A DNA stretch of 64,000 nt from Leidyana gryllorum EB-2025a (Eukaryota > Protista > Apicomplexa): the NCBI GenBank assembly GCA_048772705.1, contig JBLWGC010000177.1, forward strand, positions 93,710 to 157,709, in the 5' to 3' direction. This document shows, piece after piece, positions 44,271-64,000 of this stretch. The notes below the pieces were generated by a model. The model ran no database searches. It was not told the DNA's origin and was given only the letters and a program-made list of their open reading frames with translations. A program made the translations under genes and the position numbers. Positions within the stretch are counted from its first letter, which is position 1. Each line of letters opens with the position of its first letter.

Positions 44271-44577
44271 GGTAGCTTTTTTTTCCGCTGATTTTTACTC
44301 AGTCCTACAAATTTGACACTCTATCCACAAAAGTTCTGCGCTCCATACTTGACCACACAAGTACAACAGGTGATGGTTTTTGCTCAGAATGCGCTCGGTG
44401 ACTCACTGGAACGGAGTCAATTAAGGTTCAGTGTGACGAAAAAGCAATCAGTCCCAGAAGCACAACAACATGAGTGTGGCGGGAGCTTCACCTTAGCAAA
44501 GTCCCACACTCAAAAGATGGGTCATTTGATATACAGATATAGAACATTGAATACTAAGGGAAGCAGATACGCATACT

Positions 44578-47500
44578 TCAGAACATATCTAAGTCAATCT
44601 GCGCGAGCGAAGCGCGAGCGGCAGCGTCTTCGTCATGACGAACAACGTCAAAATCGTATTCAGAGTATATATCGCCGACTGGTGTTTCGTCAGTAGGGGA
44701 CGACTGCTGGTTGCGACGCGCAAACCAGAATCCAGATGCAAAAGACCCGATTGATCCCACACCTGCTGCTGCGGCGGCGATGTAAACGCCCGACCAAGAA
44801 TCGTTCATAGTTTCCGACTTGGTTTCAGAGGAAGAAGAGCTCGAGTTAAGTACACTTCCATCGTCGGTACCGATGAGGTCGGCTCCGAATCCAGCTGCGC
44901 TGAGTAAGTCTTTGCCTTCTGCAGCCGAGTACGAATCCTTGGCATCAGCGTGGATGTCTTCCTCTTGAGATTCCGACACCACAGGCAAGAATGCACCGCG
45001 GGCAGCAATAAATTCACCCATAGATTCTTCCTTCTCCTTGGCCGCGTGACGTTCTGCCAAGAACTCGCGCACAGCTTCAATGTCCTCGGAAACACAAATC
45101 CAGATACATTCTGGTTCTGTAATGAGATCAGTTGTCGGCAATTCGGTGAATAGCGTGGGAGATGAGACTGAGATGCTCCAAGTTGTGTAGGACTCTGTTT
45201 GGCTGACCGTTGTGGTGAACCCGCCTGTAGTGGTAGTGGTAGTCGGCGGTACTTCAGTGGAAGTGGTGGTCGTCGGCGGCTCCTCAGTGGAGGTAGTGGT
45301 CGTCGGCGGTACTTCAGTACTGGGAGTGGGCTTGGGGGGCTGACGAGTTTCAGTAGTGGTCACTTCAGTGGTAGGCGGCTGCTCAGTGGTGATACCAGTG
45401 GAAGTGGTGGTCGTCGGCGGTACTTCAGTGGAAGTGGTGGTCGTCGGCGGTACTTCAGTGGAAGTAGTGGTAGTCGGCGGTACTTCAGTGGAAGTAGTCG
45501 TCGTCGGCGGTACTTCAGTGGAAGTAGTGGTAGTCGGCGGTACTTCAGTGGAAGTGGTGGTCGTCGGCGGCTCCTCAGTGGAGGTAGTGGTCGTCGGCGG
45601 TACTTCAGTACTGGGAGTGGGCTTGGGGGGCTGACGAGTTTCAGTAGTGGTCACTTCAGTGGTAGGCGGCTGCTCAGTGGTGATACCAGTAGACGTGGTG
45701 GTAGTCGGAGGCTCCTCAGTGGAAGTGGTGGTCGTCGGCGGTACTTCAGTTGAAGTGGTGGTAGTGGGAGGTACTTCAGTGGAACTGGTGGTTGTCGGAG
45801 GCTCCTCAGTAGAAGTAGTGGTCGTCGGCGGTACTTCAGTGGAAGTGGTGGTCGTCGGAGGCTCCTCAGTTGAAGTAGTGGTCGTCGGCGGTACTTCAGT
45901 GGAACTGGTGGTTGTCGGAGGCTCCTCAGTAGAAGTAGTGGTCGTCGGCGGTACTTCAGTGGAAGTGGTGGTCGTCGGCGGTACTTCAGTACTGGGAGTG
46001 GGCTTGGGGGGCTGACGAGTTTCAGTAGTGGTCACTTCAGTGGTAGGCGGCTGCTCAGTGGTGATACCAGTAGACGTGGTGGTCGTCGGCGGCTCCTCAG
46101 TGGAAGTGGTGGTCGTCGGCGGTACTTCAGTGGAAGTGGTGGTAGTGGGAGGTACTTCAGTGGAAGTAGTGGTCGTCGGAGGCTCCTCAGTGGAAGTGGT
46201 GGTCGTCGGCGGTACTTCAGTGGAAGTAGTGGTCGTCGGAGGCTCCTCAGTGGAAGTGGTGGTCGTCGGCGGTACTTCAGTGGAAGTAGTGGTAGTCGGA
46301 GGCTCCTCAGTGGAAGTAGTGGTCGTCGGCGGTACTTCAGTGGAAGTAGTGGTCGTCGGAGGCTCCTCAGTAGAAGTAGTGGTCGTCGGCGGTACTTCAG
46401 TGGAAGTAGTGGTCGTCGGAGGCTCCTCAGTAGAAGTAGTGGTCGTCGGCGGTACTTCAGTGGAAGTGGTGGTAGTGGGAGGTACTTCAGTGGAAGTAGT
46501 GGTCGTCGGAGGCTCCTCAGTAGAAGTAGTGGTCGTCGGAGGTACTTCAGTGGAAGTGGTGGTCGTCGGTGGTACTTCAGTGGAACTGGTGGTCGTCGGA
46601 GGCTCCTCAGTAGAAGTAGTGGTCGTCGGCGGTACTTCAGTGGAAGTGGTGGTCGTCGGCGGTACTTCAGTACTGGGAGTGGGCTTGGGGGGCTGACGAG
46701 TTTCAGTAGTGGTCACTTCAGTGGTCGTCGGAGGCTCCTCAGTGGTGATACCAGTAGACGTGGTGGTCGTCGGCGGCTCCTCAGTGGAAGTGGTGGTCGT
46801 CGGCGGTACTTCAGTGGAAGTAGTGGTACTGGGAGGTACTTCAGTGGAAGTGGTGGTAGTGGGAGGTACTTCAGTGGAAGTAGTGGTCGTCGGAGGCTCC
46901 TCAGTGGAAGTGGTGGTCGTCGGCGGTACTTCAGTGGAAGTGGTGGTAGTCGGAGGCTCCTCAGTGGAAGTAGTGGTCGTCGGCGGTACTTCAGTGGAAG
47001 TAGTGGTCGTCGGCGGTACTTCAGTGGAAGTAGTGGTCGTCGGAGGCTCCTCAGTAGAAGTAGTGGTCGTCGGCGGTACTTCAGTGGAAGTAGTGGTCGT
47101 CGGAGGCTCCTCAGTAGAAGTAGTGGTCGTCGGCGGTACTTCAGTGGAAGTGGTGGTAGTCGGAGGCTCCTCAGTGGAAGTAGTGGTCGTCGGCGGTACT
47201 TCAGTGGAAGTGGTGGTCGTCGGCGGTACTTCAGTGGAAGTGGTGGTCGTCGGCGGTTCCTCAGTGGAAGTGGTGGTCGTCGGCGGTACTTCAGTGGAAG
47301 TGGTGGTCGTCGGAGGCTCCTCAGTGGAAGTGGTGGTCGTCGGCGGTACTTCAGTGGAAGTAGTGGTCGTCGGAGGCTCCTCAGTAGAAGTAGTGGTCGT
47401 CGGCGGTACTTCAGTGGAAGTAGTGGTCGTCGGAGGCTCCTCAGTAGAAGTAGTGGTCGTCGGCGGTACTTCAGTACTGGGAGTGGGCTTGGGGGGCTGA

Positions 47501-50500
47501 CGAGTTTCAGTAGTGGTCACTTCAGTGGTAGGCGGCTGCTCAGTGGTGATACCAGTAGACGTGGTGGTAGTGGGAGGCTCCTCAGTAGAAGTAGTGGTCG
47601 TCGGCGGTACTTCAGTGGAAGTAGTGGTAGTCGGAGGCTCCTCAGTAGAAGTAGTGGTCGTCGGCGGTACTTCAGTGGAAGTAGTGGTCGTCGGAGGCTC
47701 CTCAGTAGAAGTAGTGGTCGTCGGCGGTACTTCAGTGGAAGTAGTGGTAGTCGGAGGCTCCTCAGTAGAAGTGGTGGTCGTCGGCGGTACTTCAGTGGAA
47801 GTAGTGGTAGTCGGAGGCTCCTCAGTGGAAGTAGTGGTCGTCGGCGGTACTTCAGTGGAAGTAGTGGTCGTCGGCGGTACTTCAGTGGAAGTGGTGGTCG
47901 TCGGAGGCTCCTCAGTAGAAGTAGTGGTCGTCGGAGGCTCCTCAGTTGAAGTAGTGGTAGTGGGAGGCTCCTCAGTGGAAGTGGTGGTCGTCGGCGGTAC
48001 TTCAGTGGAAGTAGTGGTCGTCGGAGGCTCCTCAGTGGAAGTGGTGGTCGTCGGCGGTACTTCAGTGGAAGTGGTGGTCGTCGGCGGTACTTCAGTAGAA
48101 GTGGTGGTCGTCGGCGGTACTTCAGTTGAAGTAGTGGTCGTCGGAGGCTCCTCAGTAGAAGTGGTGGTCGTCGGAGGCTCCTCAGTAGAAGTAGTGGTCG
48201 TCGGCGGTACTTCAGTGGAAGTAGTGGTAGTGGGAGGCTCCTCAGTGGAAGTGGTAGTCGTCGGCGGTACTTCAGTGGAAGTAGTGGTAGTGGGAGGCTC
48301 CTCAGTGGAAGTAGTGGTCGTCGGAGGCTCCTCAGTGGAAGTGGTGGTCGTCGGCGGTACTTCAGTGGAAGTGGTGGTCGTCGGCGGTACTTCAGTAGAA
48401 GTGGTGGTCGTCGGCGGTACTTCAGTTGAAGTAGTGGTCGTCGGAGGCTCCTCAGTTGAAGTAGTGGTAGTGGGAGGCTCCTCAGTGGAAGTGGTGGTCG
48501 TCGGCGGTACTTCAGTGGAAGTAGTGGTCGTCGGAGGCTCCTCAGTGGAAGTGGTGGTCGTCGGCGGTACTTCAGTGGAAGTGGTGGTCGTCGGCGGTAC
48601 TTCAGTGGAAGTGGTGGTCGTCGGCGGTACTTCAGTACTGGGAGTGGGCTTGGGGGGCTGACGAGTTTCAGTAGTGGTCACTTCAGTGGTAGGCGGCTGC
48701 TCAGTGGTGATACCAGTAGACGTGGTGGTAGTCGGAGGCTCCTCAGTAGAAGTGGTGGTCGTCGGCGGTACTTCAGTGGAAGTAGTGGTCGTCGGAGGCT
48801 CCTCAGTAGAAGTAGTGGTCGTCGGAGGCTCCTCAGTTGAAGTAGTGGTTGTCGGCGGAACTTCAGTGGAAGTAGTGGTAGTGGGAGGCTCCTCAGTGGA
48901 AGTGGTAGTCGTCGGCGGTACTTCAGTGGAAGTAGTGGTAGTGGGAGGCTCCTCAGTGGAAGTGGTAGTCGTCGGCGGTACTTCAGTGGAAGTTGTGGTC
49001 GTCGGAGGCTCCTCAGTAGAAGTAGTGGTCGTCGGAGGCTCCTCAGTAGAAGTAGTGGTCGTCGGCGGAACTTCAGTGGAAGTAGTGGTAGTGGGAGGCT
49101 CCTCAGTGGAAGTGGTAGTCGTCGGCGGTACTTCAGTGGAAGTAGTGGTAGTGGGAGGCTCCTCAGTGGAAGTGGTGGTCGTCGGCGGTACTTCAGTGGA
49201 AGTAGTGGTCGTCGGAGGCTCCTCAGTGGAAGTGGTGGTCGTCGGCGGTACTTCAGTGGAAGTAGTGGTAGTCGGAGGCTCCTCAGTGGAAGTAGTGGTT
49301 GTCGGCGGAACTTCAGTGGAAGTGGTGGTCGTCGGCGGTACTTCAGTAGAAGTGGTGGTCGTCGGCGGTACTTCAGTTGAAGTAGTGGTCGTCGGAGGCT
49401 CCTCAGTAGAAGTGGTGGTCGTCGGAGGCTCCTCAGTAGAAGTAGTGGTCGTCGGCGGTACTTCAGTGGAAGTAGTGGTAGTGGGAGGCTCCTCAGTGGA
49501 AGTGGTAGTCGTCGGCGGTACTTCAGTGGAAGTAGTGGTAGTGGGAGGCTCCTCAGTGGAAGTAGTGGTCGTCGGAGGCTCCTCAGTGGAAGTGGTGGTC
49601 GTCGGCGGTACTTCAGTGGAAGTGGTGGTCGTCGGCGGTACTTCAGTGGAAGTGGTGGTCGTCGGCGGTACTTCAGTAGAAGTGGTGGTCGTCGGCGGTA
49701 CTTCAGTTGAAGTAGTGGTCGTCGGAGGCTCCTCAGTTGAAGTAGTGGTAGTGGGAGGCTCCTCAGTGGAAGTGGTGGTCGTCGGCGGTACTTCAGTGGA
49801 AGTAGTGGTCGTCGGAGGCTCCTCAGTGGAAGTGGTGGTCGTCGGCGGTACTTCAGTGGAAGTAGTGGTAGTCGGAGGCTCCTCAGTGGAAGTGGTGGTC
49901 GTCGGCGGTACTTCAGTGGAAGTAGTGGTAGTCGGAGGCTCCTCAGTGGAAGTAGTGGTTGTCGGCGGAACTTCAGTGGAAGTGGTGGTCGTCGGCGGTA
50001 CTTCAGTGGAAGTGGTGGTCGTCGGCGGTACTTCAGTACTGGGAGTGGGCTTGGGGGGCTGACGAGTTTCAGTAGTGGTCACTTCAGTGGTAGGCGGCTG
50101 CTCAGTGGTGATACCAGTAGACGTGGTGGTAGTCGGAGGCTCCTCAGTAGAAGTGGTGGTCGTCGGCGGTACTTCAGTGGAAGTAGTGGTCGTCGGAGGC
50201 TCCTCAGTGGAAGTAGTGGTTGTCGGCGGAACTTCAGTGGAAGTGGTGGTCGTCGGCGGTACTTCAGTGGAAGTGGTGGTCGTCGGCGGTACTTCAGTGG
50301 AAGTAGTGGTAGTCGGAGGCTCCTCAGTAGAAGTAGTGGTCGTCGGCGGTACTTCAGTGGAAGTAGTGGTCGTCGGAGGCTCCTCAGTGGAAGTGGTGGT
50401 CGTCGGCGGTACTTCAGTGGAAGTGGTGGTCGTGGGCGGTACTTCAGTGGAAGTAGTGGTCGTCGGCGGTACTTCAGTGGAAGTGGTGGTCGTCGGCGGT

Positions 50501-53500
50501 ACTTCAGTAGAAGTGGTGGTCGTCGGCGGTACTTCAGTTGAAGTAGTGGTCGTCGGAGGCTCCTCAGTTGAAGTAGTGGTAGTGGGAGGCTCCTCAGTGG
50601 AAGTGGTGGTCGTCGGCGGTACTTCAGTGGAAGTAGTGGTCGTCGGCGGTACTTCAGTGGAAGTGGTGGTCGTCGGAGGCTCCTCAGTAGAAGTAGTGGT
50701 CGTCGGAGGCTCCTCAGTGGAAGTGGTAGTCGTCGGCGGTACTTCAGTGGAAGTAGTGGTAGTGGGAGGCTCCTCAGTGGAAGTGGTAGTCGTCGGCGGT
50801 ACTTCAGTGGAAGTTGTGGTCGTCGGAGGCTCCTCAGTGGAAGTGGTGGTCGTCGGCGGTACTTCAGTGGAAGTAGTGGTCGTCGGAGGCTCCTCAGTGG
50901 AAGTAGTGGTCGTCGGAGGCTCCTCAGTGGAAGTGGTGGTCGTCGGCGGTACTTCAGTGGAAGTGGTGGTCGTGGGCGGTACTTCAGTGGAAGTAGTGGT
51001 CGTCGGCGGTACTTCAGTGGAAGTAGTGGTTGTCGGCGGAACTTCAGTGGAAGTGGTGGTCGTCGGCGGTACTTCAGTGGAAGTGGTGGTCGTCGGCGGT
51101 ACTTCAGTGGAAGTAGTGGTAGTCGGAGGCTCCTCAGTAGAAGTAGTGGTCGTCGGCGGTACTTCAGTGGAAGTAGTGGTCGTCGGAGGCTCCTCAGTGG
51201 AAGTAGTGGTCGTCGGAGGCTCCTCAGTGGAAGTGGTGGTCGTCGGCGGTACTTCAGTGGAAGTGGTGGTCGTCGGCGGTACTTCAGTGGAAGTGGTGGT
51301 CGTCGGCGGTACTTCAGTAGAAGTGGTGGTCGTCGGCGGTACTTCAGTTGAAGTAGTGGTCGTCGGAGGCTCCTCAGTTGAAGTAGTGGTAGTGGGAGGC
51401 TCCTCAGTGGAAGTGGTGGTCGTCGGCGGTACTTCAGTGGAAGTAGTGGTCGTCGGAGGCTCCTCAGTGGAAGTGGTGGTCGTCGGCGGTACTTCAGTGG
51501 AAGTAGTGGTAGTGGGAGGCTCCTCAGTGGAAGTGGTAGTCGTCGGCGGTACTTCAGTGGAAGTAGTGGTAGTGGGAGGCTCCTCAGTGGAAGTGGTAGT
51601 CGTCGGCGGTACTTCAGTGGAAGTTGTGGTCGTCGGAGGCTCCTCAGTAGAAGTAGTGGTCGTCGGAGGCTCCTCAGTAGAAGTAGTGGTCGTCGGCGGA
51701 ACTTCAGTGGAAGTAGTGGTAGTGGGAGGCTCCTCAGTGGAAGTGGTAGTCGTCGGCGGTACTTCAGTGGAAGTAGTGGTAGTGGGAGGCTCCTCAGTGG
51801 AAGTGGTGGTCGTCGGCGGTACTTCAGTGGAAGTAGTGGTCGTCGGAGGCTCCTCAGTGGAAGTGGTGGTCGTCGGCGGTACTTCAGTGGAAGTAGTGGT
51901 AGTCGGAGGCTCCTCAGTGGAAGTAGTGGTTGTCGGCGGAACTTCAGTGGAAGTGGTGGTCGTCGGAGGCTCCTCAGTGGAAGTGGTGGTCGTCGGCGGT
52001 ACTTCAGTGGAAGTAGTGGTAGTCGGAGGCTCCTCAGTGGAAGTAGTGGTTGTCGGCGGAACTTCAGTGGAAGTGGTGGTCGTCGGCGGTACTTCAGTGG
52101 AAGTGGTGGTCGTCGGCGGTACTTCAGTGGAAGTAGTGGTAGTCGGAGGCTCCTCAGTAGAAGTAGTGGTCGTCGGCGGTACTTCAGTGGAAGTAGTGGT
52201 CGTCGGAGGCTCCTCAGTGGAAGTGGTGGTCGTCGGCGGTACTTCAGTGGAAGTGGTGGTCGTGGGCGGTACTTCAGTGGAAGTAGTGGTCGTCGGCGGT
52301 ACTTCAGTGGAAGTGGTGGTCGTCGGAGGCTCCTCAGTAGAAGTAGTGGTCGTCGGAGGCTCCTCAGTTGAAGTAGTGGTCGTCGGCGGTACTTCAGTGG
52401 AAGTAGTGGTAGTCGGCGGTACTTCAGTACTGGGAGTGGGCTTGGGGGGCTGACGAGTTTCAGTAGTGGTCACTTCAGTGGTAGGCGGCTGCTCAGTGGT
52501 GATACCAGTAGACGTGGTGGTAGTCGGAGGCTCCTCAGTAGAAGTGGTGGTCGTCGGCGGTACTTCAGTGGAAGTAGTGGTCGTCGGAGGCTCCTCAGTA
52601 GAAGTAGTGGTCGTCGGAGGCTCCTCAGTTGAAGTAGTGGTAGTGGGAGGCTCCTCAGTGGAAGTGGTGGTCGTCGGCGGTACTTCAGTGGAAGTAGTGG
52701 TCGTCGGAGGCTCCTCAGTGGAAGTGGTGGTCGTCGGCGGTACTTCAGTGGAAGTAGTGGTAGTCGGAGGCTCCTCAGTGGAAGTAGTGGTCGTCGGCGG
52801 TACTTCAGTGGAAGTAGTGGTAGTCGGAGGCTCCTCAGTAGAAGCAGTGGTCGTCGGCGGTACTTCAGTGGAAGTGGTGGTCGTCGGAGGCTCCTCAGTA
52901 GAAGTAGTGGTCGTCGGCGGTACTTCAGTGGAAGTAGTGGTCGTCGGAGGCTCCTCAGTAGAAGTAGTGGTCGTCGGCGGTACTTCAGTGGAAGTGGTGG
53001 TCGTCGGCGGTACTTCAGTGGAAGTAGTGGTCGTCGGAGGCTCCTCAGTAGAAGTAGTGGTCGTCGGCGGTACTTCAGTGGAAGTGGTGGTCGTCGGCGG
53101 TACTTCAGTACTGGGAGTGGGCTTGGGGGGCTGACGAGTTTCAGTAGTGGTCACTTCAGTGGTAGGCGGCTGCTCAGTGGTGATACCAGTAGACGTGGTG
53201 GTAGTCGGAGGCTCCTCAGTAGAAGTGGTGGTCGTCGGCGGTACTTCAGTGGAAGTAGTGGTCGTCGGAGGCTCCTCAGTAGAAGTAGTGGTCGTCGGAG
53301 GCTCCTCAGTTGAAGTAGTGGTCGTCGGCGGTACTTCAGTGGAAGTGGTGGTCGTCGGCGGTACTTCAGTGGAAGTAGTGGTAGTCGGAGGCTCCTCAGT
53401 AGAAGCAGTGGTCGTCGGCGGTACTTCAGTGGAAGTGGTGGTCGTCGGAGGCTCCTCAGTAGAAGTAGTGGTCGTCGGCGGTACTTCAGTGGAAGTAGTG

Positions 53501-56500: not shown

Positions 56501-59500
56501 GTGGTGATACCAGTAGACATGGTGGTAGTGGGAGGCTCCTCAGTGGAAGTGGTGGTCGTCGGCGGTACTTCAGTGGAAGTAGTGGTCGTCGGAGGCTCCT
56601 CAGTAGAAGTAGTGGTCGTCGGCGGTACTTCAGTGGAAGTAGTGGTCGTCGGAGGCTCCTCAGTAGAAGTAGTGGTCGTCGGCGGTACTTCAGTGGAAGT
56701 GGTGGTCGTCGGCGGCTCCTCAGTAGAAGTAGTGGTCGTCGGCGGTACTTCAGTGGAAGTAGTGGTAGTCGGAGGCTCCTCAGTAGAAGTAGTGGTCGTC
56801 GGCGGTACTTCAGTGGAAGTAGTGGTCGTCGGCGGCTCCTCAGTGGAAGTGGTGGTAGTCGGAGGCTCCTCAGTGGAAGTGGTGGTCGTCGGCGGCTCCT
56901 CAGTGGAAGTGGTGGTAGTCGGAGGCTCCTCAGTGGAGGTAGTGGTCGTCGGCGGTACTTCAGTACTGGGAGTGGGCTTGGGGGGCTGACGAGTTTCAGT
57001 AGTGGTCACTTCAGTGGTAGGCGGCTGCTCAGTGGTGATACCAGTAGACGTGGTGGTAGTGGGAGGCTCCTCAGTAGAAGTAGTGGTCGTCGGCGGTACT
57101 TCAGTGGAAGTAGTGGTCGTCGGAGGCTCCTCAGTTGAAGTGGTGGTCGTCGGCGGTACTTCAGTGGAAGTAGTGGTCGTCGGAGGCTCCTCAGTGGAAG
57201 TGGTGGTCGTCGGCGGTACTTCAGTGGAAGTAGTGGTCGTCGGAGGCTCCTCAGTGGAAGTTGTGGTCGTCGGCGGAACTTCAGTAGAAGTAGTGGTCGT
57301 CGGCGGTACTTCAGTGGAAGTGGTGGTCGTCGGCGGTACTTCAGTGGAAGTGGTGGTCGTCGGCGGTACTTCAGTGGAAGTAGTGGTAGTCGGAGGCTCC
57401 TCAGTAGAAGTGGTGGTCGTCGGAGGCTCCTCAGTAGAAGTGGTGGTCGTCGGAGGCTCCTCAGTGGAAGTCGTGGTAGTCGGAGGCTCCTCAGTAGAGG
57501 TAGTGGTCGTCGGAGGTACTTCAGTGGAAGTAGTGGTCGTCGGAGGCTCCTCAGTGGAAGTAGTGGTTGTCGGAGGCACTTCAGTGGAAGTAGTGGTAGT
57601 CGGAGGCATTTCAGTGGAAGTAGTGGTAGTCGGCGGTACTTCAGTGGAAGTAGTGGTTGTCGGCGGTACTTCAGTGGAAGTGGTGGTCGTCGGCGGTACT
57701 TCAGTGGAAGTGGTGGTCGTCGGCGGCTCCTCAGTGGAAGTAGTGGTCGTCGGAGGCACTTCAGTGGAAGTGGTGGTCGTCGGCGGTACTTCAGTGGAAG
57801 TGGTGGTAGTCGGAGGCTCCTCAGTGGAAGTGGTGGTCGTCGGCGGCTCCTCAGTGGAAGTGGTGGTAGTCGGAGGCTCCTCAGTGGAGGTAGTGGTCGT
57901 CGGCGGTACTTCAGTACTGGGAGTGGGCTTGGGGGGCTGACGAGTTTCAGTAGTGGTCACTTCAGTGGTAGGCGGCTGCTCAGTGGTGATACCAGTAGAC
58001 GTGGTGGTAGTGGGAGGCTCCTCAGTAGAAGTAGTGGTCGTCGGCGGTACTTCAGTGGAAGTAGTGGTAGTCGGAGGCTCCTCAGTGGAAGTAGTGGTCG
58101 TCGGCGGTACTTCAGTGGAAGTAGTGGTCGTCGGCGGTACTTCAGTGGAAGTAGTGGTAGTCGGAGGCTCCTCAGTGGAAGTAGTGGTTGTCGGCGGAAC
58201 TTCAGTGGAAGTGGTGGTTGTCGGCGGTACTTCAGTGGAAGTGGTGGTCGTCGGCGGTACTTCAGTGGAAGTGGTGGTCGTCGGCGGTACTTCAGTGGAA
58301 GTAGTGGTAGTCGGAGGCTCCTCAGTGGAAGTGGTGGTAGTCGGCGGTACTTCAGTGGAAGTAGTGGTCGTCGGAGGCTCCTCAGTAGAAGTAGTGGTCG
58401 TCGGCGGTACTTCAGTGGAAGTAGTGGTCGTCGGAGGCTCCTCAGTGGAAGTGGTGGTCGTCGGCGGTACTTCAGTGGAAGTAGTGGTCGTCGGAGGCTC
58501 CTCAGTAGAAGTAGTGGTCGTCGGCGGTACTTCAGTGGAAGTGGTGGTCGTCGGCGGTACTTCAGTGGAAGTGGTAGTCGGAGGCTCCTCAGTGGAAGTG
58601 GTGGTAGTGGGAGGCTCCTCAGTGGAAGTGGTGGTCGTCGGAGGTACTTCAGTGGAAGTAGTGGTCGTCGGCGGTACCTCAGTGGAAGTAGTGGTCGTCG
58701 GAGGTACTTCAGTGGAAGTGGTGGTAGTGGGAGGCTCCTCAGTGGAAGTGGTGGTAGTCGGCGGTACTTCAGTGGAAGTAGTCGTCGTCGGCGGTACTTC
58801 AGTGGAAGTAGTGGTAGTCGGCGGTACTTCAGTGGAAGTAGTGGTCGTCGGCGGCTCCTCAGTGGAAGTGGTGGTCGTCGGCGGTACTTCAGTACTGGGA
58901 GTGGGCTTGGGGGGCTGACGAGTTTCAGTAGTGGTCACTTCAGTGGTAGGCGGCTGCTCAGTGGTGATACCAGTAGACGTGGTGGTAGTCGGAGGCTCCT
59001 CAGTGGAAGTGGTGGTAGTCGGAGGCTCCTCAGTAGAGGTAGGTGGCTCAGCTGTCGAAGAAATCTCCTCGCTCGACTCCATCGAGACAGCCGTTGTGCT
59101 GGAGTCTTCCGTTTCCATCGAGAGAGTCACAGTAGTGTATGAAGCAGTGCTGTCATCTGGCGAGGTGATGAAAACAGTCGTGGTGGTGGGAACATCGTCG
59201 GAGCCAGCTGGGATCTCGGTGAGATCAGTGGTTAAAACAATACCAGTTGTAGTCGACGTGGTCACACCCGTCACCGTAGATGTAGTCGTGAGCTCAGAAA
59301 TGGTGGAGATAGTGGTAGTCGGAGGCTCCTCAGTAGAGGTAGTGCTCGTCGGCGGTACTTCAGTGGAAGTGGTGGTCGTCGGCGGTACTTCAGTGGAAGT
59401 GGTGGTCGTCGGCGGTACTTCAGTGGAAGTGGTGGTCGTCGGAGGCTCCTCAGTGGAAGTGGTGGTCGTCGGAGGCTCCTCAGTGGAAGTGGTGGTCGTC

Positions 59501-62500
59501 GGAGGCTCCTCAGTGGAAGTGGTGGTCGTCGGCGGCTCCTCAGTGGAAGTGGTGGTAGTCGGAGGCTCCTCAGTGGAGGTAGTGGTCGTCGGCGGTACTT
59601 CAGTACTGGGAGTGGGCTTGGGGGGCTGACGAGTTTCAGTAGTGGTCACTTCAGTGGTAGGCGGCTGCTCAGTGGTGATACCAGTAGACGTGGTGGTAGT
59701 GGGAGGCTCCTCAGTAGAAGTAGTGGTCGTCGGCGGTACTTCAGTGGAAGTAGTGGTAGTCGGAGGCTCCTCAGTTGAAGTGGTGGTCGTCGGCGGTACT
59801 TCAGTGGAAGTAGTGGTAGTGGGAGGCTCCTCAGTAGAAGTAGTGGTCGTCGGCGGTACTTCAGTGGAAGTGGTGGTCGTCGGCGGTACTTCAGTGGAAG
59901 TGGTGGTCGTCGGCGGTACTTCAGTGGAAGTGGTGGTCGTCGGCGGTACTTCAGTGGAAGTGGTGGTCGTCGGCGGTACTTCAGTGGAAGTGGTGGTCGT
60001 CGGAGGCTCCTCAGTGGAAGTGGTGGTCGTCGGAGGCTCCTCAGTGGAAGTGGTGGTCGTCGGCGGCTCCTCAGTGGAAGTGGTGGTAGTCGGAGGCTCC
60101 TCAGTGGAGGTAGTGGTCGTCGGCGGTACTTCAGTACTGGGAGTGGGCTTGGGGGGCTGACGAGTTTCAGTAGTGGTCACTTCAGTGGTAGGCGGCTGCT
60201 CAGTGGTGATACCAGTAGACGTGGTGGTAGTGGGAGGCTCCTCAGTAGAAGTAGTGGTCGTCGGCGGTACTTCAGTGGAAGTAGTGGTAGTCGGAGGCTC
60301 CTCAGTTGAAGTGGTGGTCGTCGGCGGTACTTCAGTGGAAGTAGTGGTCGTCGGAGGCTCCTCAGTGGAAGTGGTGGTAGTGGGAGGTACTTCAGTGGAA
60401 GTAGTGGTCGTCGGCGGCTCCTCAGTGGAAGTGGTGGTAGTCGGAGGCTCCTCAGTGGAAGTGGTGGTCGTCGGCGGTACTTCAGTGGAAGTGGTGGTCG
60501 TCGGAGGCTCCTCAGTGGAAGTGGTGGTCGTCGGAGGCTCTTCAGTGGAAGTGGTGGTAGTCGGAGGCTCCTCAGTGGAAGTGGTGGTCGTCGGCGGTAC
60601 TTCAGTGGAAGTGGTGGTCGTCGGAGGCTCCTCAGTGGAAGTGGTGGTCGTCGGAGGCTCCTCAGTGGAAGTAGTGGTCGTCGGAGGTACTTCAGTGGAA
60701 GTAGTGGTCGTCGGCGGTACCTCAGTGGAAGTGGTGGTCGTCGGAGGTACTTCAGTGGAAGTAGTGGTCGTCGGAGGTACTTCAGTGGAAGTGGTGGTCG
60801 TCGGCGGTACTTCAGTGGAAGTGGTGGTCGTCGGAGGTACTTCAGTGGAAGTGGTGGTCGTCGGAGGTACTTCAGTGGAAGTAGTGGTCGTCGGCGGTAC
60901 CTCAGTGGAAGTGGTGGTAGTGGGAGGCTCCTCAGTGGAAGTGGTGGTAGTGGGAGGTACTTCAGTGGAAGTGGTGGTCGTCGGCGGCTCCTCAGTGGAA
61001 GTAGTGGTCGTCGGAGGCTCCTCAGTGGAAGTGGTGGTCGTCGGCGGCTCCTCAGTGGAAGTAGTGGTCGTCGGAGGCTCCTCAGTGGAAGTGGTGGTCG
61101 TCGGCGGTACTTCAGTGGAAGTGGTGGTCGTCGGAGGTACTTCAGTGGAAGTGGTGGTCGTCGGAGGTACTTCAGTGGAAGTAGTGGTAGTCGGAGGTAC
61201 TTCAGTGGAAGTGGTGGTCGTCGGAGGCTCCTCAGTGGAAGTGGTGGTCGTCGGAGGCTCCTCAGTGGAAGTGGTGGTCGTCGGCGGTACTTCAGTGGAA
61301 GTAGTGGTCGTCGGAGGCTCCTCAGTGGAAGTGGTGGTCGTCGGCGGCTCTTCAGTGGAAGTGGTGGTAGTCGGAGGTACTTCAGTGGAAGTGGTGGTAG
61401 TCGGAGGTACTTCAGTGGAAGTGGTGGTAGTCGGAGGCTCCTCAGTAGAGGTAGTGGTCGTCGGCGGCTCCTCAGTAGAAGTGGTGGTCGTCGGCGGCTC
61501 TTCAGTGGAAGTAGGAGGCTGCTCGACAACAGTGGTTGTCGGTTCCTCAGTGGTGGTAGGCGGCTGCTCCACAACAGTGGTTGTCGGTTCCTCAGTGGAG
61601 GTAGTCGGAGGCACAGTAGTGGTAGGAGGCTGCTCGACAACAGTGGTGGTCGGTTCCTCAGTGGTGGTAGGCGGCTGCTCCACAACAGTGGTTGTCGGTT
61701 CCTCGGTGGTGGTAGGAGGCTGCTCGACAACAGTGGTGGTCGGTTCCTCAGTGGAGGTAGTCGGAGGCACAGTAGTGGTAGGAGGCTGCTCGACAACAGT
61801 GGTGGTCGGTTCCTCAGTGGTGGTAGGCGGCTGCTCGACAACAGTGGTGGTCGGTTCCTCGGTGGTGGTAGGCGGCTGCTCCACAACAGTAGTGGTCGGT
61901 TCCTCAGTGGAGGTAGTTGGAGGCACAGTAGTGGTAGGAGGCTGCTCGACAACAGTGGTGGTCGGTTCCTCAGTGGTGGTAGGAGGCTGCTCGACAACAG
62001 TGGTGGTCGGTTCCTCAGTGGAGGTAGTCGGAGGCACAGTAGTGGTAGGCGGCTGCTCGACAACAGTGGTGGTCGGTTCCTCAGTGGTGGTAGGAGGCTG
62101 CTCGACAACAGTGGTGGTCGGTTCCTCAGTGGTGGTAGGCGGCTGCTCCACAACAGTGGTGGTCGGTTCCTCAGTGGTGGTAGTCGGAGGCACAGTAGTG
62201 GTAGGAGGCTGCTCGACAACAGTGGTGGTCGGTTCCTCAGTGGAGGTAGTCGGAGGCACAGTAGTGGTAGGCGGCTGCTCGACAACAGTGGTGGTCGGTT
62301 CCTCAGTGGTGGTAGGAGGCTGCTCGACAACAGTGGTGGTCGGTTCCTCAGTGGAGGTAGTCGGAGGCACAGTAGTGGTAGGAGGCTGCTCGACAACAGT
62401 AGTGGTCGGTTCCTCAGTAGTGGTAGGAGGCTGCTCGACAACAGTGGTGGTCGGTTCCTCAGTGGTGGTAGGCGGCTGCTCGACAACAGTGGTGGTCGGT

Positions 62501-64000
62501 TCCTCAGTGGAGGTAGTCGGAGGCACAGTAGTGGTAGGAGGCTGCTCGACAACAGTGGTGGTCGGTTCCTCAGAGGAGGTAGTCGGAGGCACAGTAGTGG
62601 TAGGCGGCTGCTCGACAACAGTGGTGGTCGGTTCCTCAGTGGTGGTAGGAGGCTGCTCGACAACAGTGGTGGTCGGTTCCTCAGTGGAGGTAGTCGGAGG
62701 CACAGTAGTGGTAGGAGGCTGCTCGACAACAGTAGTGGTCGGTTCCTCAGTGGAGGTAGTCGGAGGCACAGTAGTGGTAGGCGGCTGCTCCACAACAGTG
62801 GTGGTCGGTTCCTCAGTGGAGGTAGTCGGAGGCACAGTAGTGGTAGGAGGCTGCTCGACAACAGTGGTGGTCGGTTCCTCAGTGGTGGTAGGAGGCTGCT
62901 CGACAACAGTGGTGGTCGGTTCCTCAGTGGAGGTAGTCGGAGGCACAGTAGTGGTAGGAGGCTGCTCGACAACAGTGGTGGTCGGTTCCTCAGTGGTGGT
63001 AGGCGGCTGCTCCACAACAGTGGTGGTCGGTTCCTCAGTGGAGGTAGTCGGAGGCACAGTAGTGGTAGGAGGCTGCTCGACAACAGTGGTGGTCGGTTCC
63101 TCAGTGGTGGTAGGAGGCTGCTCGACAACAGTGGTGGTCGGTTCCTCAGTGGAGGTAGTCGGAGGCACAGTAGTGGTAGGAGGCTGCTCGACAACAGTGG
63201 TGGTCGGTTCCTCAGTGGTGGTAGGAGGCTGCTCGACAACAGTGGTGGTCGGTTCCTCAGTGGAGGTAGTCGGAGGCACAGTAGTGGTAGGAGGCTGCTC
63301 GACAACAGTGGTGGTCGGTTCCTCAGTGGAGGTAGTCGGAGGCACAGTAGTGGTAGGCGGCTGCTCGACAACAGTGGTGGTCGGTTCCTCAGTGGTGGTA
63401 GGAGGCTGCTCGACAACAGTGGTGGTCGGTTCCTCAGTGGAGGTAGTCGGAGGCACAGTAGTGGTAGGAGGCTGCTCGACAACAGTGGTGGTCGGTTCCT
63501 CAGTGGTGGTAGGAGGCTGCTCGACAACAGTGGTGGTCGGTTCCTCAGTGGAGGTAGTCGGAGGCACAGTAGTGGTAGGCGGCTGCTCGACAACAGTGGT
63601 GGTCGGTTCCTCAGTGGTGGTAGGCGGCTGCTCGACAACAGTGGTGGTCGGTTCCTCAGTGGAGGTAGTCGGAGGCACAGTAGTGGTAGGAGGCTGCTCG
63701 ACAACAGTGGTGGTCGGTTCCTCAGTGGTGGTAGGAGGCTGCTCGACAACAGTGGTGGTCGGTTCCTCAGTGGAGGTAGTCGGAGGCACAGTAGTGGTAG
63801 GCGGCTGCTCGACAACAGTGGTGGTCGGTTCCTCAGTGGTGGTAGGAGGCTGCTCGACAACAGTGGTGGTCGGTTCCTCAGTGGAGGTAGTCGGAGGCAC
63901 AGTAGTGGTAGGAGGCTGCTCGACAACAGTGGTGGTCGGTTCCTCAGTGGAGGTAGTCGGAGGCACAGTAGTGGTAGGAGGCTGCTGCTCGACGATCCGT
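44578..64000 (-). CDS. Giant type-I membrane mucin-like surface protein (>6,470 aa; 5' end outside window)
   Basis: A single stop-free frame runs from the window edge to the stop at 44578. About 6,250 aa are T/P/E/V/S repeats, followed by a short unique ectodomain, TM segment VYIAAAAAGVGSIGSFASGFWFA (about 44719-44790), an RR stop-transfer and a roughly 46-aa acidic tail. Confidence 0.9.
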   Translation of the reverse strand, partial: RIVEQQPPTTTVPPTTSTEEPTTTVVEQPPTTTVPPTTSTEEPTTTVVEQPPTTTEEPTTTVVEQPPTTTVPPTTSTEEPTTTVVEQPPTTTEEPTTTVVEQPPTTTVPPTTSTEEPTTTVVEQPPTTTEEPTTTVVEQPPTTTVPPTTSTEEPTTTVVEQPPTTTEEPTTTVVEQPPTTTVPPTTSTEEPTTTVVEQPPTTTEEPTTTVVEQPPTTTVPPTTSTEEPTTTVVEQPPTTTVPPTTSTEEPTTTVVEQPPTTTEEPTTTVVEQPPTTTVPPTTSTEEPTTTVVEQPPTTTEEPTTTVVEQPPTTTVPPTTSTEEPTTTVVEQPPTTTEEPTTTVVEQPPTTTVPPTTSTEEPTTTVVEQPPTTTEEPTTTVVEQPPTTTVPPTTSTEEPTTTVVEQPPTTTVPPTTSTEEPTTTVVEQPPTTTVPPTTSTEEPTTTVVEQPPTTTEEPTTTVVEQPPTTTVPPTTSSEEPTTTVVEQPPTTTVPPTTSTEEPTTTVVEQPPTTTEEPTTTVVEQPPTTTEEPTTTVVEQPPTTTVPPTTSTEEPTTTVVEQPPTTTEEPTTTVVEQPPTTTVPPTTSTEEPTTTVVEQPPTTTVPPTTTTEEPTTTVVEQPPTTTEEPTTTVVEQPPTTTEEPTTTVVEQPPTTTVPPTTSTEEPTTTVVEQPPTTTEEPTTTVVEQPPTTTVPPTTSTEEPTTTVVEQPPTTTEEPTTTVVEQPPTTTEEPTTTVVEQPPTTTVPPTTSTEEPTTTVVEQPPTTTEEPTTTVVEQPPTTTEEPTTTVVEQPPTTTVPPTTSTEEPTTTVVEQPPTTTEEPTTTVVEQPPTSTEEPPTTTTSTEEPPTTTTSTEEPPTTTTSTEVPPTTTTSTEVPPTTTTSTEEPPTTTTSTEEPPTTTTSTEVPPTTTTSTEEPPTTTTSTEEPPTTTTSTEVPPTTTTSTEVPPTTTTSTEVPPTTTTSTEVPPTTTTSTEEPPTTTTSTEEPPTTTTSTEEPPTTTTSTEEPPTTTTSTEVPPTTTTSTEEPPTTTTSTEVPPTTTTSTEVPPTTTTSTEVPPTTTTSTEVPPTTTTSTEVPPTTTTSTEVPPTTTTSTEVPPTTTTSTEVPPTTTTSTEEPPTTTTSTEEPPTTTTSTEVPPTTTTSTEEPPTTTTSTEEPPTTTTSTEEPPTTTTSTEVPPTTTTSTEEPPTTTTSTEEPPTTTTSTEVPPTTTTSTEEPPTTTTSTEVPPTTTTSTEEPPTTTTSTEVPPTTTTSTEEPPTTTTSTGITTEQPPTTEVTTTETRQPPKPTPSTEVPPTTTTSTEEPPTTTTSTEEPPTTTTSTEEPPTTTTSTEEPPTTTTSTEVPPTTTTSTEVPPTTTTSTEVPPTTTTSTEVPPTTTTSTEVPPTTTTSTEEPPTTTTSTEVPPTTTTSTEEPPTTTTSTEVPPTTTTSTEEPPTTTTSTGITTEQPPTTEVTTTETRQPPKPTPSTEVPPTTTTSTEEPPTTTTSTEEPPTTTTSTEEPPTTTTSTEEPPTTTTSTEEPPTTTTSTEVPPTTTTSTEVPPTTTTSTEVPPTSTTSTEEPPTTTISTISELTTTSTVTGVTTSTTTGIVLTTDLTEIPAGSDDVPTTTTVFITSPDDSTASYTTVTLSMETEDSSTTAVSMESSEEISSTAEPPTSTEEPPTTTTSTEEPPTTTTSTGITTEQPPTTEVTTTETRQPPKPTPSTEVPPTTTTSTEEPPTTTTSTEVPPTTTTSTEVPPTTTTSTEVPPTTTTSTEEPPTTTTSTEVPPTTTTSTEVPPTTTTSTEVPPTTTTSTEEPPTTTTSTEEPPTTTSTEVPPTTTTSTEVPPTTTTSTEEPPTTTTSTEVPPTTTTSTEEPPTTTTSTEVPPTTTTSTEEPPTTTTSTEVPPTTTTSTEEPPTTTTSTEVPPTTTTSTEVPPTTTTSTEVPPTTTTSTEVPPTTTTSTEEPPTTTTSTEVPPTTTTSTEVPPTTTTSTEEPPTTTTSTEVPPTTTTSTEEPPTTTTSTGITTEQPPTTEVTTTETRQPPKPTPSTEVPPTTTTSTEEPPTTTTSTEEPPTTTTSTEEPPTTTTSTEVPPTTTTSTEVPPTTTTSTEEPPTTTTSTEVPPTTTTSTEVPPTTTTSTEVPPTTTTSTEMPPTTTTSTEVPPTTTTSTEEPPTTTTSTEVPPTTTTSTEEPPTTTTSTEEPPTTTTSTEEPPTTTTSTEEPPTTTTSTEVPPTTTTSTEVPPTTTTSTEVPPTTTTSTEVPPTTTTSTEEPPTTTTSTEVPPTTTTSTEEPPTTTTSTEVPPTTTTSTEEPPTTTTSTEVPPTTTTSTEEPPTTTTSTGITTEQPPTTEVTTTETRQPPKPTPSTEVPPTTTTSTEEPPTTTTSTEEPPTTTTSTEEPPTTTTSTEEPPTTTTSTEVPPTTTTSTEEPPTTTTSTEVPPTTTTSTEEPPTTTTSTEVPPTTTTSTEEPPTTTTSTEVPPTTTTSTEEPPTTTTSTEVPPTTTTSTEEPPTTTMSTGITTEQPPTTEVTTTETRQPPKPTPSTEVPPTTTTSTEVPPTTTTSTEEPPTTTTSTEVPPTTTTSTEEPPTTTSSTEVPPTTTTSTEEPPTTTTSTEVPPTTTTSTEEPPTTTTSTEVPPTTTTSTEEPPTTTTSTEVPPTTTTSTEEPPTTTTSTEVPPTTTTSTEEPPTTTTSTEVPPTTTTSTEEPPTTTTSTEVPPTTTTSTEEPPTTTTSTGITTEQPPTTEVTTTETRQPPKPTPSTEVPPTTTTSTEVPPTTTTSTEEPPTTTTSTEVPPTTTTSTEEPPTTTMSTGITTEQPPTTEVTTTETRQPPKPTPSTEVPPTTTTSTEVPPTTTTSTEEPPTTTTSTEVPPTTTTSTEEPPTTTSSTEVPPTTTTSTEEPPTTTTSTEVPPTTTTSTEEPPTTTTSTEEPPTTTTSTEVPPTTTTSTEVPPTTTTSTEEPPTTTTSTEEPPTTTTSTEVPPTTTTSTEVPPTTTTSTEEPPTTTTSTEEPPTTTTSTEVPPTTTTSTEEPPTTTTSTEVPPTTTTSTEEPPTTTTSTEEPPTTTTSTEEPPTTTTSTEVPPTTTTSTEEPPTTTTSTEEPPTTTTSTEVPPTTTTSTEVPPTTTTSTEEPPTTTTSTEEPPTTTTSTEVPPTTTTSTEVPPTTTTSTEEPPTTTTSTEEPPTTTTSTEVPPTTTTSTEVPPTTTTSTEEPPTTTTSTEVPPTTTTSTEEPPTTTTSTEVPPTTTTSTEEPPTTTTSTEVPPTTTTSTEVPPTTTTSTEVPPTTTTSTEEPPTTTTSTEEPPTTTTSTEVPPTTTTSTEVPPTTTTSTEEPPTTTTSTEVPPTTTTSTEVPPTTTTSTEEPPTTTTSTEEPPTTTTSTEEPPTTTTSTEVPPTTTTSTEEPPTTTTSTEVPPTTTTSTEEPPTTTTSTEVPPTTTTSTEEPPTTTTSTEVPPTTTTSTEEPPTTTTSTGITTEQPPTTEVTTTETRQPPKPTPSTEVPPTTTTSTEVPPTTTTSTEEPPTTTTSTEVPPTTTTSTEEPPTTTTSTEVPPTTTASTEEPPTTTTSTEVPPTTTTSTEVPPTTTTSTEEPPTTTTSTEEPPTTTTSTEVPPTTTTSTEEPPTTTTSTGITTEQPPTTEVTTTETRQPPKPTPSTEVPPTTTTSTEVPPTTTTSTEEPPTTTTSTEVPPTTTTSTEVPPTTTTSTEEPPTTTTSTEVPPTTTTSTEEPPTTTTSTEVPPTTTASTEEPPTTTTSTEVPPTTTTSTEEPPTTTTSTEVPPTTTTSTEEPPTTTTSTEVPPTTTTSTEEPPTTTTSTEEPPTTTTSTEEPPTTTTSTEVPPTTTTSTEEPPTTTTSTGITTEQPPTTEVTTTETRQPPKPTPSTEVPPTTTTSTEVPPTTTTSTEEPPTTTTSTEEPPTTTTSTEVPPTTTTSTEVPPTTTTSTEVPPTTTTSTEEPPTTTTSTEVPPTTTTSTEEPPTTTTSTEVPPTTTTSTEVPPTTTTSTEVPPTTTTSTEEPPTTTTSTEVPPTTTTSTEEPPTTTTSTEVPPTTTTSTEEPPTTTTSTEVPPTTTTSTEEPPTTTTSTEVPPTTTTSTEEPPTTTTSTEVPPTTTTSTEEPPTTTTSTEVPPTTTTSTEEPPTTTTSTEEPPTTTTSTEVPPTTTTSTEEPPTTTTSTEVPPTTTTSTEEPPTTTTSTEVPPTTTTSTEEPPTTTTSTEVPPTTTTSTEEPPTTTTSTEEPPTTTTSTEVPPTTTTSTEVPPTTTTSTEVPPTTTTSTEVPPTTTTSTEEPPTTTTSTEEPPTTTTSTEVPPTTTTSTEEPPTTTTSTEVPPTTTTSTEVPPTTTTSTEVPPTTTTSTEVPPTTTTSTEVPPTTTTSTEVPPTTTTSTEEPPTTTTSTEEPPTTTTSTEVPPTTTTSTEEPPTTTTSTEVPPTTTTSTEEPPTTTTSTEVPPTTTTSTEEPPTTTTSTEEPPTTTTSTEVPPTTTTSTEVPPTTTTSTEEPPTTTTSTEEPPTTTTSTEVPPTTTTSTEVPPTTTTSTEVPPTTTTSTEVPPTTTTSTEVPPTTTTSTEEPPTTTTSTEVPPTTTTSTEEPPTTTTSTEVPPTTTTSTEVPPTTTTSTEVPPTTTTSTEEPPTTTTSTEVPPTTTTSTEEPPTTTTSTGITTEQPPTTEVTTTETRQPPKPTPSTEVPPTTTTSTEVPPTTTTSTEVPPTTTTSTEEPPTTTTSTEVPPTTTTSTEEPPTTTTSTEVPPTTTTSTEEPPTTTTSTEVPPTTTTSTEEPPTTTTSTEEPPTTTTSTEVPPTTTTSTEVPPTTTTSTEVPPTTTTSTEVPPTTTTSTEEPPTTTTSTEEPPTTTTSTEVPPTTTTSTEEPPTTTTSTEVPPTTTTSTEEPPTTTTSTEEPPTTTTSTEVPPTTTTSTEVPPTTTTSTEVPPTTTTSTEEPPTTTTSTEVPPTTTTSTEEPPTTTTSTEVPPTTTTSTEEPPTTTTSTEVPPTTTTSTEEPPTTTTSTEVPPTTTTSTEEPPTTTTSTEEPPTTTTSTEVPPTTTTSTEEPPTTTTSTEVPPTTTTSTEEPPTTTTSTEVPPTTTTSTEEPPTTTTSTEEPPTTTTSTEVPPTTTTSTEEPPTTTTSTGITTEQPPTTEVTTTETRQPPKPTPSTEVPPTTTTSTEVPPTTTTSTEVPPTTTTSTEEPPTTTTSTEVPPTTTTSTEEPPTTTTSTEEPPTTTTSTEVPPTTTTSTEVPPTTTTSTEVPPTTTTSTEEPPTTTTSTEEPPTTTTSTEVPPTTTTSTEEPPTTTTSTEVPPTTTTSTEEPPTTTTSTEEPPTTTTSTEVPPTTTTSTEVPPTTTTSTEVPPTTTTSTEEPPTTTTSTEVPPTTTTSTEEPPTTTTSTEEPPTTTTSTEEPPTTTTSTEVPPTTTTSTEVPPTTTTSTEEPPTTTTSTEVPPTTTTSTEEPPTTTTSTEVPPTTTTSTEEPPTTTTSTEVPPTTTTSTEEPPTTTTSTEVPPTTTTSTEEPPTTTTSTGITTEQPPTTEVTTTETRQPPKPTPSTEVPPTTTTSTEEPPTTTTSTEVPPTTTTSTEEPPTTTTSTEVPPTTTTSTEEPPTTTTSTEVPPTTTTSTEEPPTTTTSTEVPPTTTTSTEVPPTTTTSTEEPPTTTTSTEVPPTTTTSTEEPPTTTTSTEVPPTTTTSTEEPPTTTTSTEVPPTTTTSTEVPPTTTTSTEEPPTTTTSTEVPPTTTTSTEEPPTTTTSTEVPPTTTTSTEVPPSTTTSTEVPPTTTTSTEEPPTTTTSTGITTEEPPTTTEVTTTETRQPPKPTPSTEVPPTTTTSTEVPPTTTTSTEEPPTTTSSTEVPPTTTTSTEVPPTTTTSTEEPPTTTTSTEVPPTTTTSTEVPPTTTTSTEEPPTTTTSTEVPPTTTTSTEEPPTTTTSTEVPPTTTTSTEEPPTTTTSTEVPPTTTTSTEEPPTTTTSTEVPPTTTTSTEEPPTTTTSTEVPPTTTTSTEVPPTTTTSTEEPPTTTTSTGITTEQPPTTEVTTTETRQPPKPTPSTEVPPTTTTSTEVPPTTTTSTEEPPTTTSSTEVPPTTTTSTEEPPTTTTSTEVPPTTTTSTEEPPTTTSSTEVPPTTTTSTEVPPTTTTSTEEPPTTTTSTGITTEQPPTTEVTTTETRQPPKPTPSTEVPPTTTTSTEEPPTTTTSTEVPPTTTTSTEVPPTTTTSTEVPPTTTTSTEVPPTTTTSTEVPPTTTTSTGITTEQPPTTEVTTTETRQPPKPTPSTEVPPTTTTSTEEPPTTTTSTEVPPTTTTTTGGFTTTVSQTESYTTWSISVSSPTLFTELPTTDLITEPECIWICVSEDIEAVREFLAERHAAKEKEESMGEFIAARGAFLPVVSESQEEDIHADAKDSYSAAEGKDLLSAAGFGADLIGTDDGSVLNSSSSSSETKSETMNDSWSGVYIAAAAAGVGSIGSFASGFWFARRNQQSSPTDETPVGDIYSEYDFDVVRHDEDAAARASLAQIDLDMF
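45240..61510. repeat. 30-bp coding tandem repeat TE(E/V)PPTTTTS (about 480 copies, estimated from lengths), punctuated by 18 copies of an 81-bp spacer module
   Basis: Visible unit CAGTGGAAGT(A/G)GTGGTCGTCGG(CGGTACTT/AGGCTCCT). The spacer containing CTGGGAGTGGGCTTGGGGGGCTGACGAG occurs at about 45320, 45611, 45992, 46673, 47477, 48638, 50039, 52430, 53111, 53582, 55553, 55784, 56435, 56966, 57917, 58895, 59606 and 60137. Confidence 0.97.
61511..63990. repeat. Second coding repeat domain: mixed 45-bp (EEPTTTVVEQPPTTT) and 66-bp (EEPTTTVVEQPPTTTVPPTTST) units
   Basis: Visible unit GGCTGCTCGACAACAGTGGTGGTCGGTTCCTCAGTGG, with or without a 21-bp GAGGTAGTCGGAGGCACAGTA insert. Confidence 0.95.

Follow-up and report, generated by a model that had tools for sequence, protein, structure and literature searches.

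A giant threonine-rich frame of a gregarine, a candidate GP900-like membrane mucin, and a family of adhesin tails ending in Met-Phe

The question raised by the 64,000-nucleotide window analyzed here, the right end of contig C177 (assembly of 15.5 Mb in 237 contigs), is what kind of surface protein might be encoded by a minus-strand open frame that runs for 6,473 codons from position 63999 to 44581 without a stop and is closed by a TGA at 44580-44578. The initial annotation described an intronless frame of more than 19.4 kb and more than 6,470 amino acids (aa), dominated by Thr and ending in a TRAP/microneme-like C-terminus. The length and the dominance of Thr were borne out: the composition of the frame is 45.9% T, 19.6% P, 14.3% E, 8.9% S and 6.3% V, and the visible product would have a mass of 671 kDa, a net charge of -900 and 3,552 Ser/Thr residues. 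The features of the locus are collected in Table 1.

The contig stops at window base 64000, inside the repeat, so that the start codon, the signal peptide and the head are absent from the visible part, and the description of the gene as intronless accordingly stands for the visible part only, the gene start being missing. The first Met in frame is codon 1628, no signal-like hydrophobic stretch is present upstream of the C-terminal region in the visible frame, and no vWA or TSP1 domain was detected within the visible 6,473 aa. No contig overlapping the end of C177 was found in DNA and pattern searches of the assembly, which placed both the distal repeat and the last 14 bases on C177 alone. The last approximately 20 bases (63980-64000) deviate from the repeat unit and might mark a low-quality end or else a degenerate first unit next to the missing head. 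A vWA frame that reaches the start of contig C221 was considered as the missing head and is not a likely one because it runs on into an FAD-binding domain; this locus (L038:1-2193, G000:C221) appears to encode a secreted fusion protein in which an integrin-beta vWA domain is joined through a short Thr/Pro linker to an FAD-binding oxidase domain. Coding on the other strand or in another frame was rejected as well, given that those frames contain stops and that the variation is synonymous in the Thr frame only.

The transaldolase encoded in the window has its best named matches in Gregarina, Protomagalhaensia and Blabericola (58-63% identity), which rank above every other named organism listed. 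Gregarines parasitize invertebrates and are relatives of Cryptosporidium and of the malaria parasites. These matches back, for one gene, the gregarine-type apicomplexan host that had been proposed from the sequence, and by this gene the host is most likely a eugregarine related to insect-gut forms. The claim that many neighboring genes carry several introns stands for one intron, a 46-nt GT-AG intron at 43385-43340 that joins two Pfam-matched glutaminyl-tRNA synthetase frames, but not beyond it: the transaldolase gene next door is a single frame, and donor motifs show no enrichment over shuffles (43 vs 39). Approximately 308 bases (44270-44578) separate the stop codon of the giant frame from the first ATG of the glutaminyl-tRNA synthetase, which lies downstream on the same strand.

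Table 1. Features of the giant frame and its predicted product (window positions).
Feature	Position	Strand
Open frame, 6,473 codons + stop, 5' end cut by the end of contig C177	44578..63999	-
Distal repeat family: 15- and 22-aa Thr/Pro/Glu/Val/Gln units, 44 VVEQPP words	61501..63999	-
Main array: 464 decapeptides ([V/E]PPTTTTSTE; 72 DNA variants) and 18 near-identical 27-aa spacers	45226..61500	-
Unique Ser/Thr/acidic island, ~87 aa, inside the array	59050..59310	-
Unique juxtamembrane region, aa 6259-6404 (146 aa)	44788..45225	-
Probable single TM helix, aa 6405-6427	44719..44787	-
Acidic cytoplasmic tail, 46 aa, 11 D/E (24%), last residue F, no Trp	44581..44718	-
Terminal 12 residues matching the gregarine adhesin-tail motif: Arg -11, Ile -5, then Asp-Met-Phe	44581..44616	-

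The tandem-repeat region of approximately 6,250 aa consists of 56% Ser+Thr and about 20% Pro, a long Pro/Thr/Ser-rich repeat of the kind that defines GP900-type mucins. The distal repeat family (approximately 830 aa) is absent elsewhere in the genome, and the Lys/Arg residues of the stalk are carried by the 27-aa spacers. The decapeptide variants follow one another in non-periodic order, and the longest exact duplicate within 19.4 kb is 476 bp, which argues against copying of blocks by the assembler. The pN/pS among unit variants, a descriptive ratio given that the variants share ancestry, is 0.09 (0.02 with the Val/Glu codon left out), and third codon positions hold 16 of the 22 variant alleles of the repeat unit. 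The number of DNA variants, the short exact duplicates and this ratio led us to reject assembly duplication as the source of the array. The mostly silent variation among units suggests selection on the Thr frame and points to a stalk that is a mucin-type repeat under purifying selection. Across positions 45226-60300, the DNA of the 18 spacers hardly differs, in contrast to the varied decapeptides, and unit variants recur in blocks of the same order; the near-identical spacers and the ordered blocks suggest a recent expansion by unequal exchange atop an older, diversified array. Two other Thr/Glu mucins with unrelated units are encoded in the same genome (L006 and L008; G000:C216 and C35), one with a globular head and the other with a GPI-like hydrophobic tail. 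O-glycosylated mucins extend by approximately 0.25 nm per residue. The stalk would be about 1.5 micrometers long or more if it is O-glycosylated.

The juxtamembrane region contains the only two Cys residues of the visible protein (CxxxC) and two N-glycosylation sequons. The predicted TM segment that follows is, as the initial annotation had it, rich in small residues (68% Ala/Gly/Ser in the best 19-mer), with aromatic residues at the end followed by Arg-Arg, but its status as a helix is less secure, the hydropathy being marginal: the best Kyte-Doolittle 19-mer scores 1.35, compared with 1.70-2.23 in the 23 members of the gregarine tail family described below, the lowest of the 24 segments. Rhomboids favor Ala/Gly-rich, helix-breaking segments (PMC4212836), and three rhomboid genes are present in the genome; the candidate cleavage-site word of the mucin is AA-GV and the AGG word is absent, whereas known rhomboid substrates contain AA-GG or IA-GG. 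The acidic tail ending in F is present as originally read, but the Tyr-based sorting motif matches poorly, the two Tyr contexts being YSEY and YDFD, neither of which is a clean YXX-hydrophobic motif. The last 220 aa, on which a database search had been proposed, have no detectable homologue in the genome itself, the protein database, Pfam, metagenome contigs or the Atlas (a search of limited reach, with a length window and no alignment), and single-sequence folding of the C-terminal region gave a pLDDT of 34.5 and no confident fold.

These properties of the TM segment bear on whether the protein would be released from the membrane at all. A static, uncleaved coat or wall protein would form an anchored acidic glycocalyx on the epicyte, or have a role in the gametocyst or oocyst, shielding the parasite from host gut enzymes and using the tail for trafficking only. 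The missing AGG word is compatible with such a role, as are the many mucins of differing anchor types in the genome and the expression of cgd3_720 of C. parvum, a giant probable mucin of 11,700 aa with a signal peptide and a Thr repeat of 308 aa, which is undetected before 48 h, the point at which transcripts of sexual stages set in (PMC3305300). We nevertheless consider permanent anchoring unlikely, given that the TM segment is unusually small-residue-rich and weakly hydrophobic for the permanent anchor of so large a protein and that the end motif is common to the mucin and adhesin-like proteins. Both cgd3_720 and the gregarine protein are giants with Thr repeats, the repeat of cgd3_720 being far more limited, and the length of cgd3_720 implies that giant size by itself has a precedent in the gregarine-Cryptosporidium clade.

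The adhesin-like proteins in question belong to a family that is well represented in the same genome, where at least 29 frames (loci L021-L049) contain integrin-beta-I/vWA domains. Three of these at least 29 frames combine an N-terminal hydrophobic leader, a vWA head, a short stalk, an Ala/Gly-rich TM segment and a tail, and the two vWA adhesins whose C-terminus was read both end in Met-Phe-Gln. Many others look soluble: they have a Thr stalk, and their C-terminal module is rich in Cys/Pro and ends in a short beta-strand-like motif in place of the TM segment. Homologues of the family come from Gregarina spp., Protomagalhaensia, Blabericola, G. niphandrodes and Porospora, and vWA-headed adhesins with a Met-Phe tail are found in four genera, the members including XP_011131229.1 of G. 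niphandrodes and a protein of Porospora cf. gigantea B. A 94-aa protein with the family tail in this marine species (P0145 / P0149) shows that the motif is not restricted to insect gregarines.

Across 23 tails, the near-terminal aromatic residue is Phe in 22, Tyr in one and Trp in none. Relative to this Phe, Arg is found at -11 in all 23 tails and Met at -1 in 21, and an acidic residue occupies -12 in 22 and -10 in all 23 family members (an E-R-E context); the last 40 residues are 17-30% acidic. The presence of Phe in 22 of the 23 tails makes it a lineage signature, and its interpretation as a private decay of the TRAP Trp was rejected because it is family-wide. Thus, the initial annotation correctly recorded that the tail of the mucin ends in F, unlike the subterminal W of TRAP, but what was taken for a discrepancy is the gregarine norm.

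Further frames with this tail were located by profile search on contigs C194, C211 and C230, including a 5,477-aa frame on C194 that ends in the family tail (E 9e-10) and a 583-aa frame on C230 that contains both an Apple domain and the tail; one 176-aa frame in the genome has the family tail and little else. A 2,888-aa frame in the same orientation contains an Apple domain 32 kb upstream of the C194 tail (G000:C194:55450-88035), and the two frames are possibly parts of one complete giant sister gene. A tandem cluster of Apple-domain frames is found on C230 (G000:C230:777137-795878). In G. niphandrodes, two annotated partial genes that flank an N gap (L052:7496-10363) together encode a vWA head, a Thr repeat, a TM segment and the tail; genes of this kind are broken and unnamed in short-read assemblies. 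A common modular plan, with a predicted secreted head (vWA/integrin-beta-I or Apple), a Thr-rich stalk, an Ala/Gly-rich TM segment and an acidic Met-Phe tail, is well supported for this genome by the architecture of the predicted products. The gregarine tail profile retrieved no identifiable TRAP or MIC2 among proteins, only Kelch-like and generic TM matches in the PDB, and no confirmed member among metagenomes. A description of the combination of vWA heads and Met-Phe tails was not found in the literature searched, which consisted largely of journals free of subscription.

The relationship of the giant mucin to this family depends mainly on its very end. With a matrix of 23 tails that was trained without the mucin, the last 20 positions score 16.2 bits, at the low end of the leave-one-out scores of family members (13.6-68.6 bits), and the best other stop-closed frame end among the 8,096 end positions scored reaches 4.5 bits; an earlier 8-tail matrix gave the same ranking. 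Permutations of the mucin's own tail reach 16.2 bits in 5 of 200,000 cases (P about 3e-5), a value that is somewhat optimistic because the motif was anchored on the Phe after the likeness had been seen. The mucin is similar to the Met-Phe vWA adhesins in the position of the TM segment, the length of the tail, the Arg at -11, the hydrophobic residue at -5 and the Asp-Met-Phe, and departs from them in the Ala residues at -12 and -10 (A-R-A, not E-R-E) and at -7, and in having nothing after the Phe. The profile of the whole TM-plus-tail region gives the mucin 7.8 bits (single-comparison P 2e-4, local E 2.6), a score that is matched by 7 of 5,000 full shuffles but by 798 of 5,000 tail-only shuffles; the same profile did not retrieve the mucin in genome-wide searches, and pairwise BLAST of its tail against one vWA-adhesin tail yielded no match. 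Taken as sequence comparisons, these results weakly suggest that the C-terminus of the mucin is a divergent member of the gregarine adhesin-tail family.

A more sceptical interpretation is that the frame does not encode a functional membrane protein as read, and represents instead a soluble mucin with a non-inserting segment and a vestigial tail, a headless relic, or an array of misassembled length. The lowest TM score of the set, the lack of significance of the whole-tail profile and the end of the contig within a repeat, with its last 20 bases deviating from the unit, can all be cited for it. Nevertheless, it appears very improbable: 19.4 kb without a frameshift or stop, the strong synonymous bias and the lack of any exact duplicate above 476 bp are not what such a history would leave behind, and the aromatic-then-basic end of the TM segment and the end motif are retained.

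In the tail of MIC2, a K-E-T word precedes the Met-Trp. Near the end of both MIC2 and Etp100 stands Met-Trp (PMC2169348, Table 1), so Met-Phe could plausibly be its counterpart. With Plasmodium TRAP/CTRP, Toxoplasma MIC2, Eimeria Etp100 and Cryptosporidium TRAP-C1 as the comparators (PMC2169348, PMC9019593), the mucin shares an Ala/Gly-rich predicted TM segment and the short acidic tail, with 24% D/E compared with 18-30% in TRAPs (PMC2169348), and differs in the Phe as the last residue, in the lack of a visible vWA or TSP1 domain and in a far longer stalk. The published definition of TRAP makes the subterminal Trp decisive (PMC9019593), so that the mucin, which has none, is not a member of the TRAP family by this definition; the TRAP/microneme-like C-terminus that was originally claimed finds support in the weak match of the end motif to the gregarine adhesin tails. 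The study of the Porospora genomes encountered no canonical TRAPs, GP900 or mucins and used the TSP1 domain to compile its TRAP-like candidates (PMC9250747).

The resemblance to TRAP raises the possibility that the mucin is a motor-linked, long-reach adhesin, in which the Met-Phe tail, as the counterpart of the TRAP/MIC2 Trp tail, would bind the glideosome connector and drag a head-tipped stalk of micrometer length rearward until its release by a rhomboid. Such a role would agree with the occurrence of family tails on vWA-headed type-I proteins with a TRAP-like layout, with an acidic content of these tails close to that of TRAPs, with the position of Met-Phe where MIC2 and Etp100 have Met-Trp (PMC2169348) and with the retention by the mucin of the invariant Arg and of Asp-Met-Phe. 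Against this, there is no Trp in the tail, and normal gliding of Plasmodium is lost once Ala-Ser replaces the terminal Trp-Asn (PMC2169348; Phe was not among the changes); the acids at -12, -10 and -7 and the residue after the Phe are missing from the mucin; its visible sequence has no head; several gregarine transcriptomes yielded no GAC (PMC9250747); and a very long flexible stalk would be expected to transmit force poorly. On balance, direct coupling of the mucin to the motor is conceivable and, in our judgment, rather doubtful.

The closest precedent in putative mode of action, as distinct from the TRAP-like layout, is GP900 (cgd7_4020) of Cryptosporidium parvum, although the likeness comes without demonstrated sequence homology. 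Both are Thr-rich mucins encoded without introns (here for the visible part), with a single small-residue TM segment (predicted in the mucin) near the C-terminus and a short tail, which in GP900 is approximately 50 aa long with an aromatic residue close to its end and in the mucin is 46 aa long with Phe as the last residue. GP900 is smaller and poorer in Thr (1,937 aa and 26% Thr, compared with more than 6,473 aa and 46% Thr), contains 15 Cys and an AA-GG site as opposed to 2 Cys in the visible part and AA-GV, and has Trp among its last residues where the mucin has Phe. GP900 is shed on gliding trails; the tail of GP900 is removed before surface exposure, and the protein has been read as a lubricant and not as a motor link (PMC9111948). 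In residues 1923-1937 of GP900 (PMC9111948), I-E-R-D before Phe-Trp resembles V-E-R-E of the gregarine tails, at a shorter spacing, and possibly represents a sorting signal shared between them.

By this parallel, the reading that we tentatively favor, at somewhat less than an even chance, is that of a giant type-I, GP900-like membrane mucin that would be shed by rhomboid cleavage to form mucus or coat. From the sequence anatomy onwards, we infer every step of the mechanism. A signal peptide and an adhesive head would lie beyond the contig end, and O-GalNAc glycosylation of about 3,550 Ser/Thr residues would produce a stiff, strongly acidic rod of roughly 1.5 micrometers or more. The tail might route the mucin via a microneme-like secretory path common to the vWA adhesins, and a rhomboid would cut the small-residue TM segment before or soon after arrival at the surface, as proposed for GP900. 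The freed ectodomain could then contribute to surface mucus and the gliding trail as a lubricant and spacer, not as a force-bearing link, and the degeneration of the acidic motif fits a protein without need for a strong grip on the motor. The genome has many other mucins, however, and any of them could be the trail component as well as this one. Gregarina leaves mucus trails (PMC3849649), with which the proposed shedding is consistent.

Gregarines glide fast, and the candidates defined here concern both their adhesins and the chemistry of their mucus trails. A broader proposal, which we regard as distinctly unlikely in its full form, is that the gregarine equivalent of TRAP is an acidic Met-Phe tail mounted on interchangeable heads (vWA, Apple or none) and on stalks of tens to many thousands of residues, such that the mucin would first grip the motor and then, once cut, become the mucus trail; if true, this would unite in a single molecule the two models of gregarine gliding, glideosome and mucus. 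The value of the present analysis lies more in the tail family than in the truncated, divergent giant mucin, which is a testable candidate for the mucus shed in gregarine gliding. Shared by gregarines of the insect gut and by Porospora, the tail motif is found on proteins with vWA or Apple heads as well as on giant mucins, and thus provides named candidates, for which the Met-Phe tail may serve as a simple handle in peptide binding and for antibodies.
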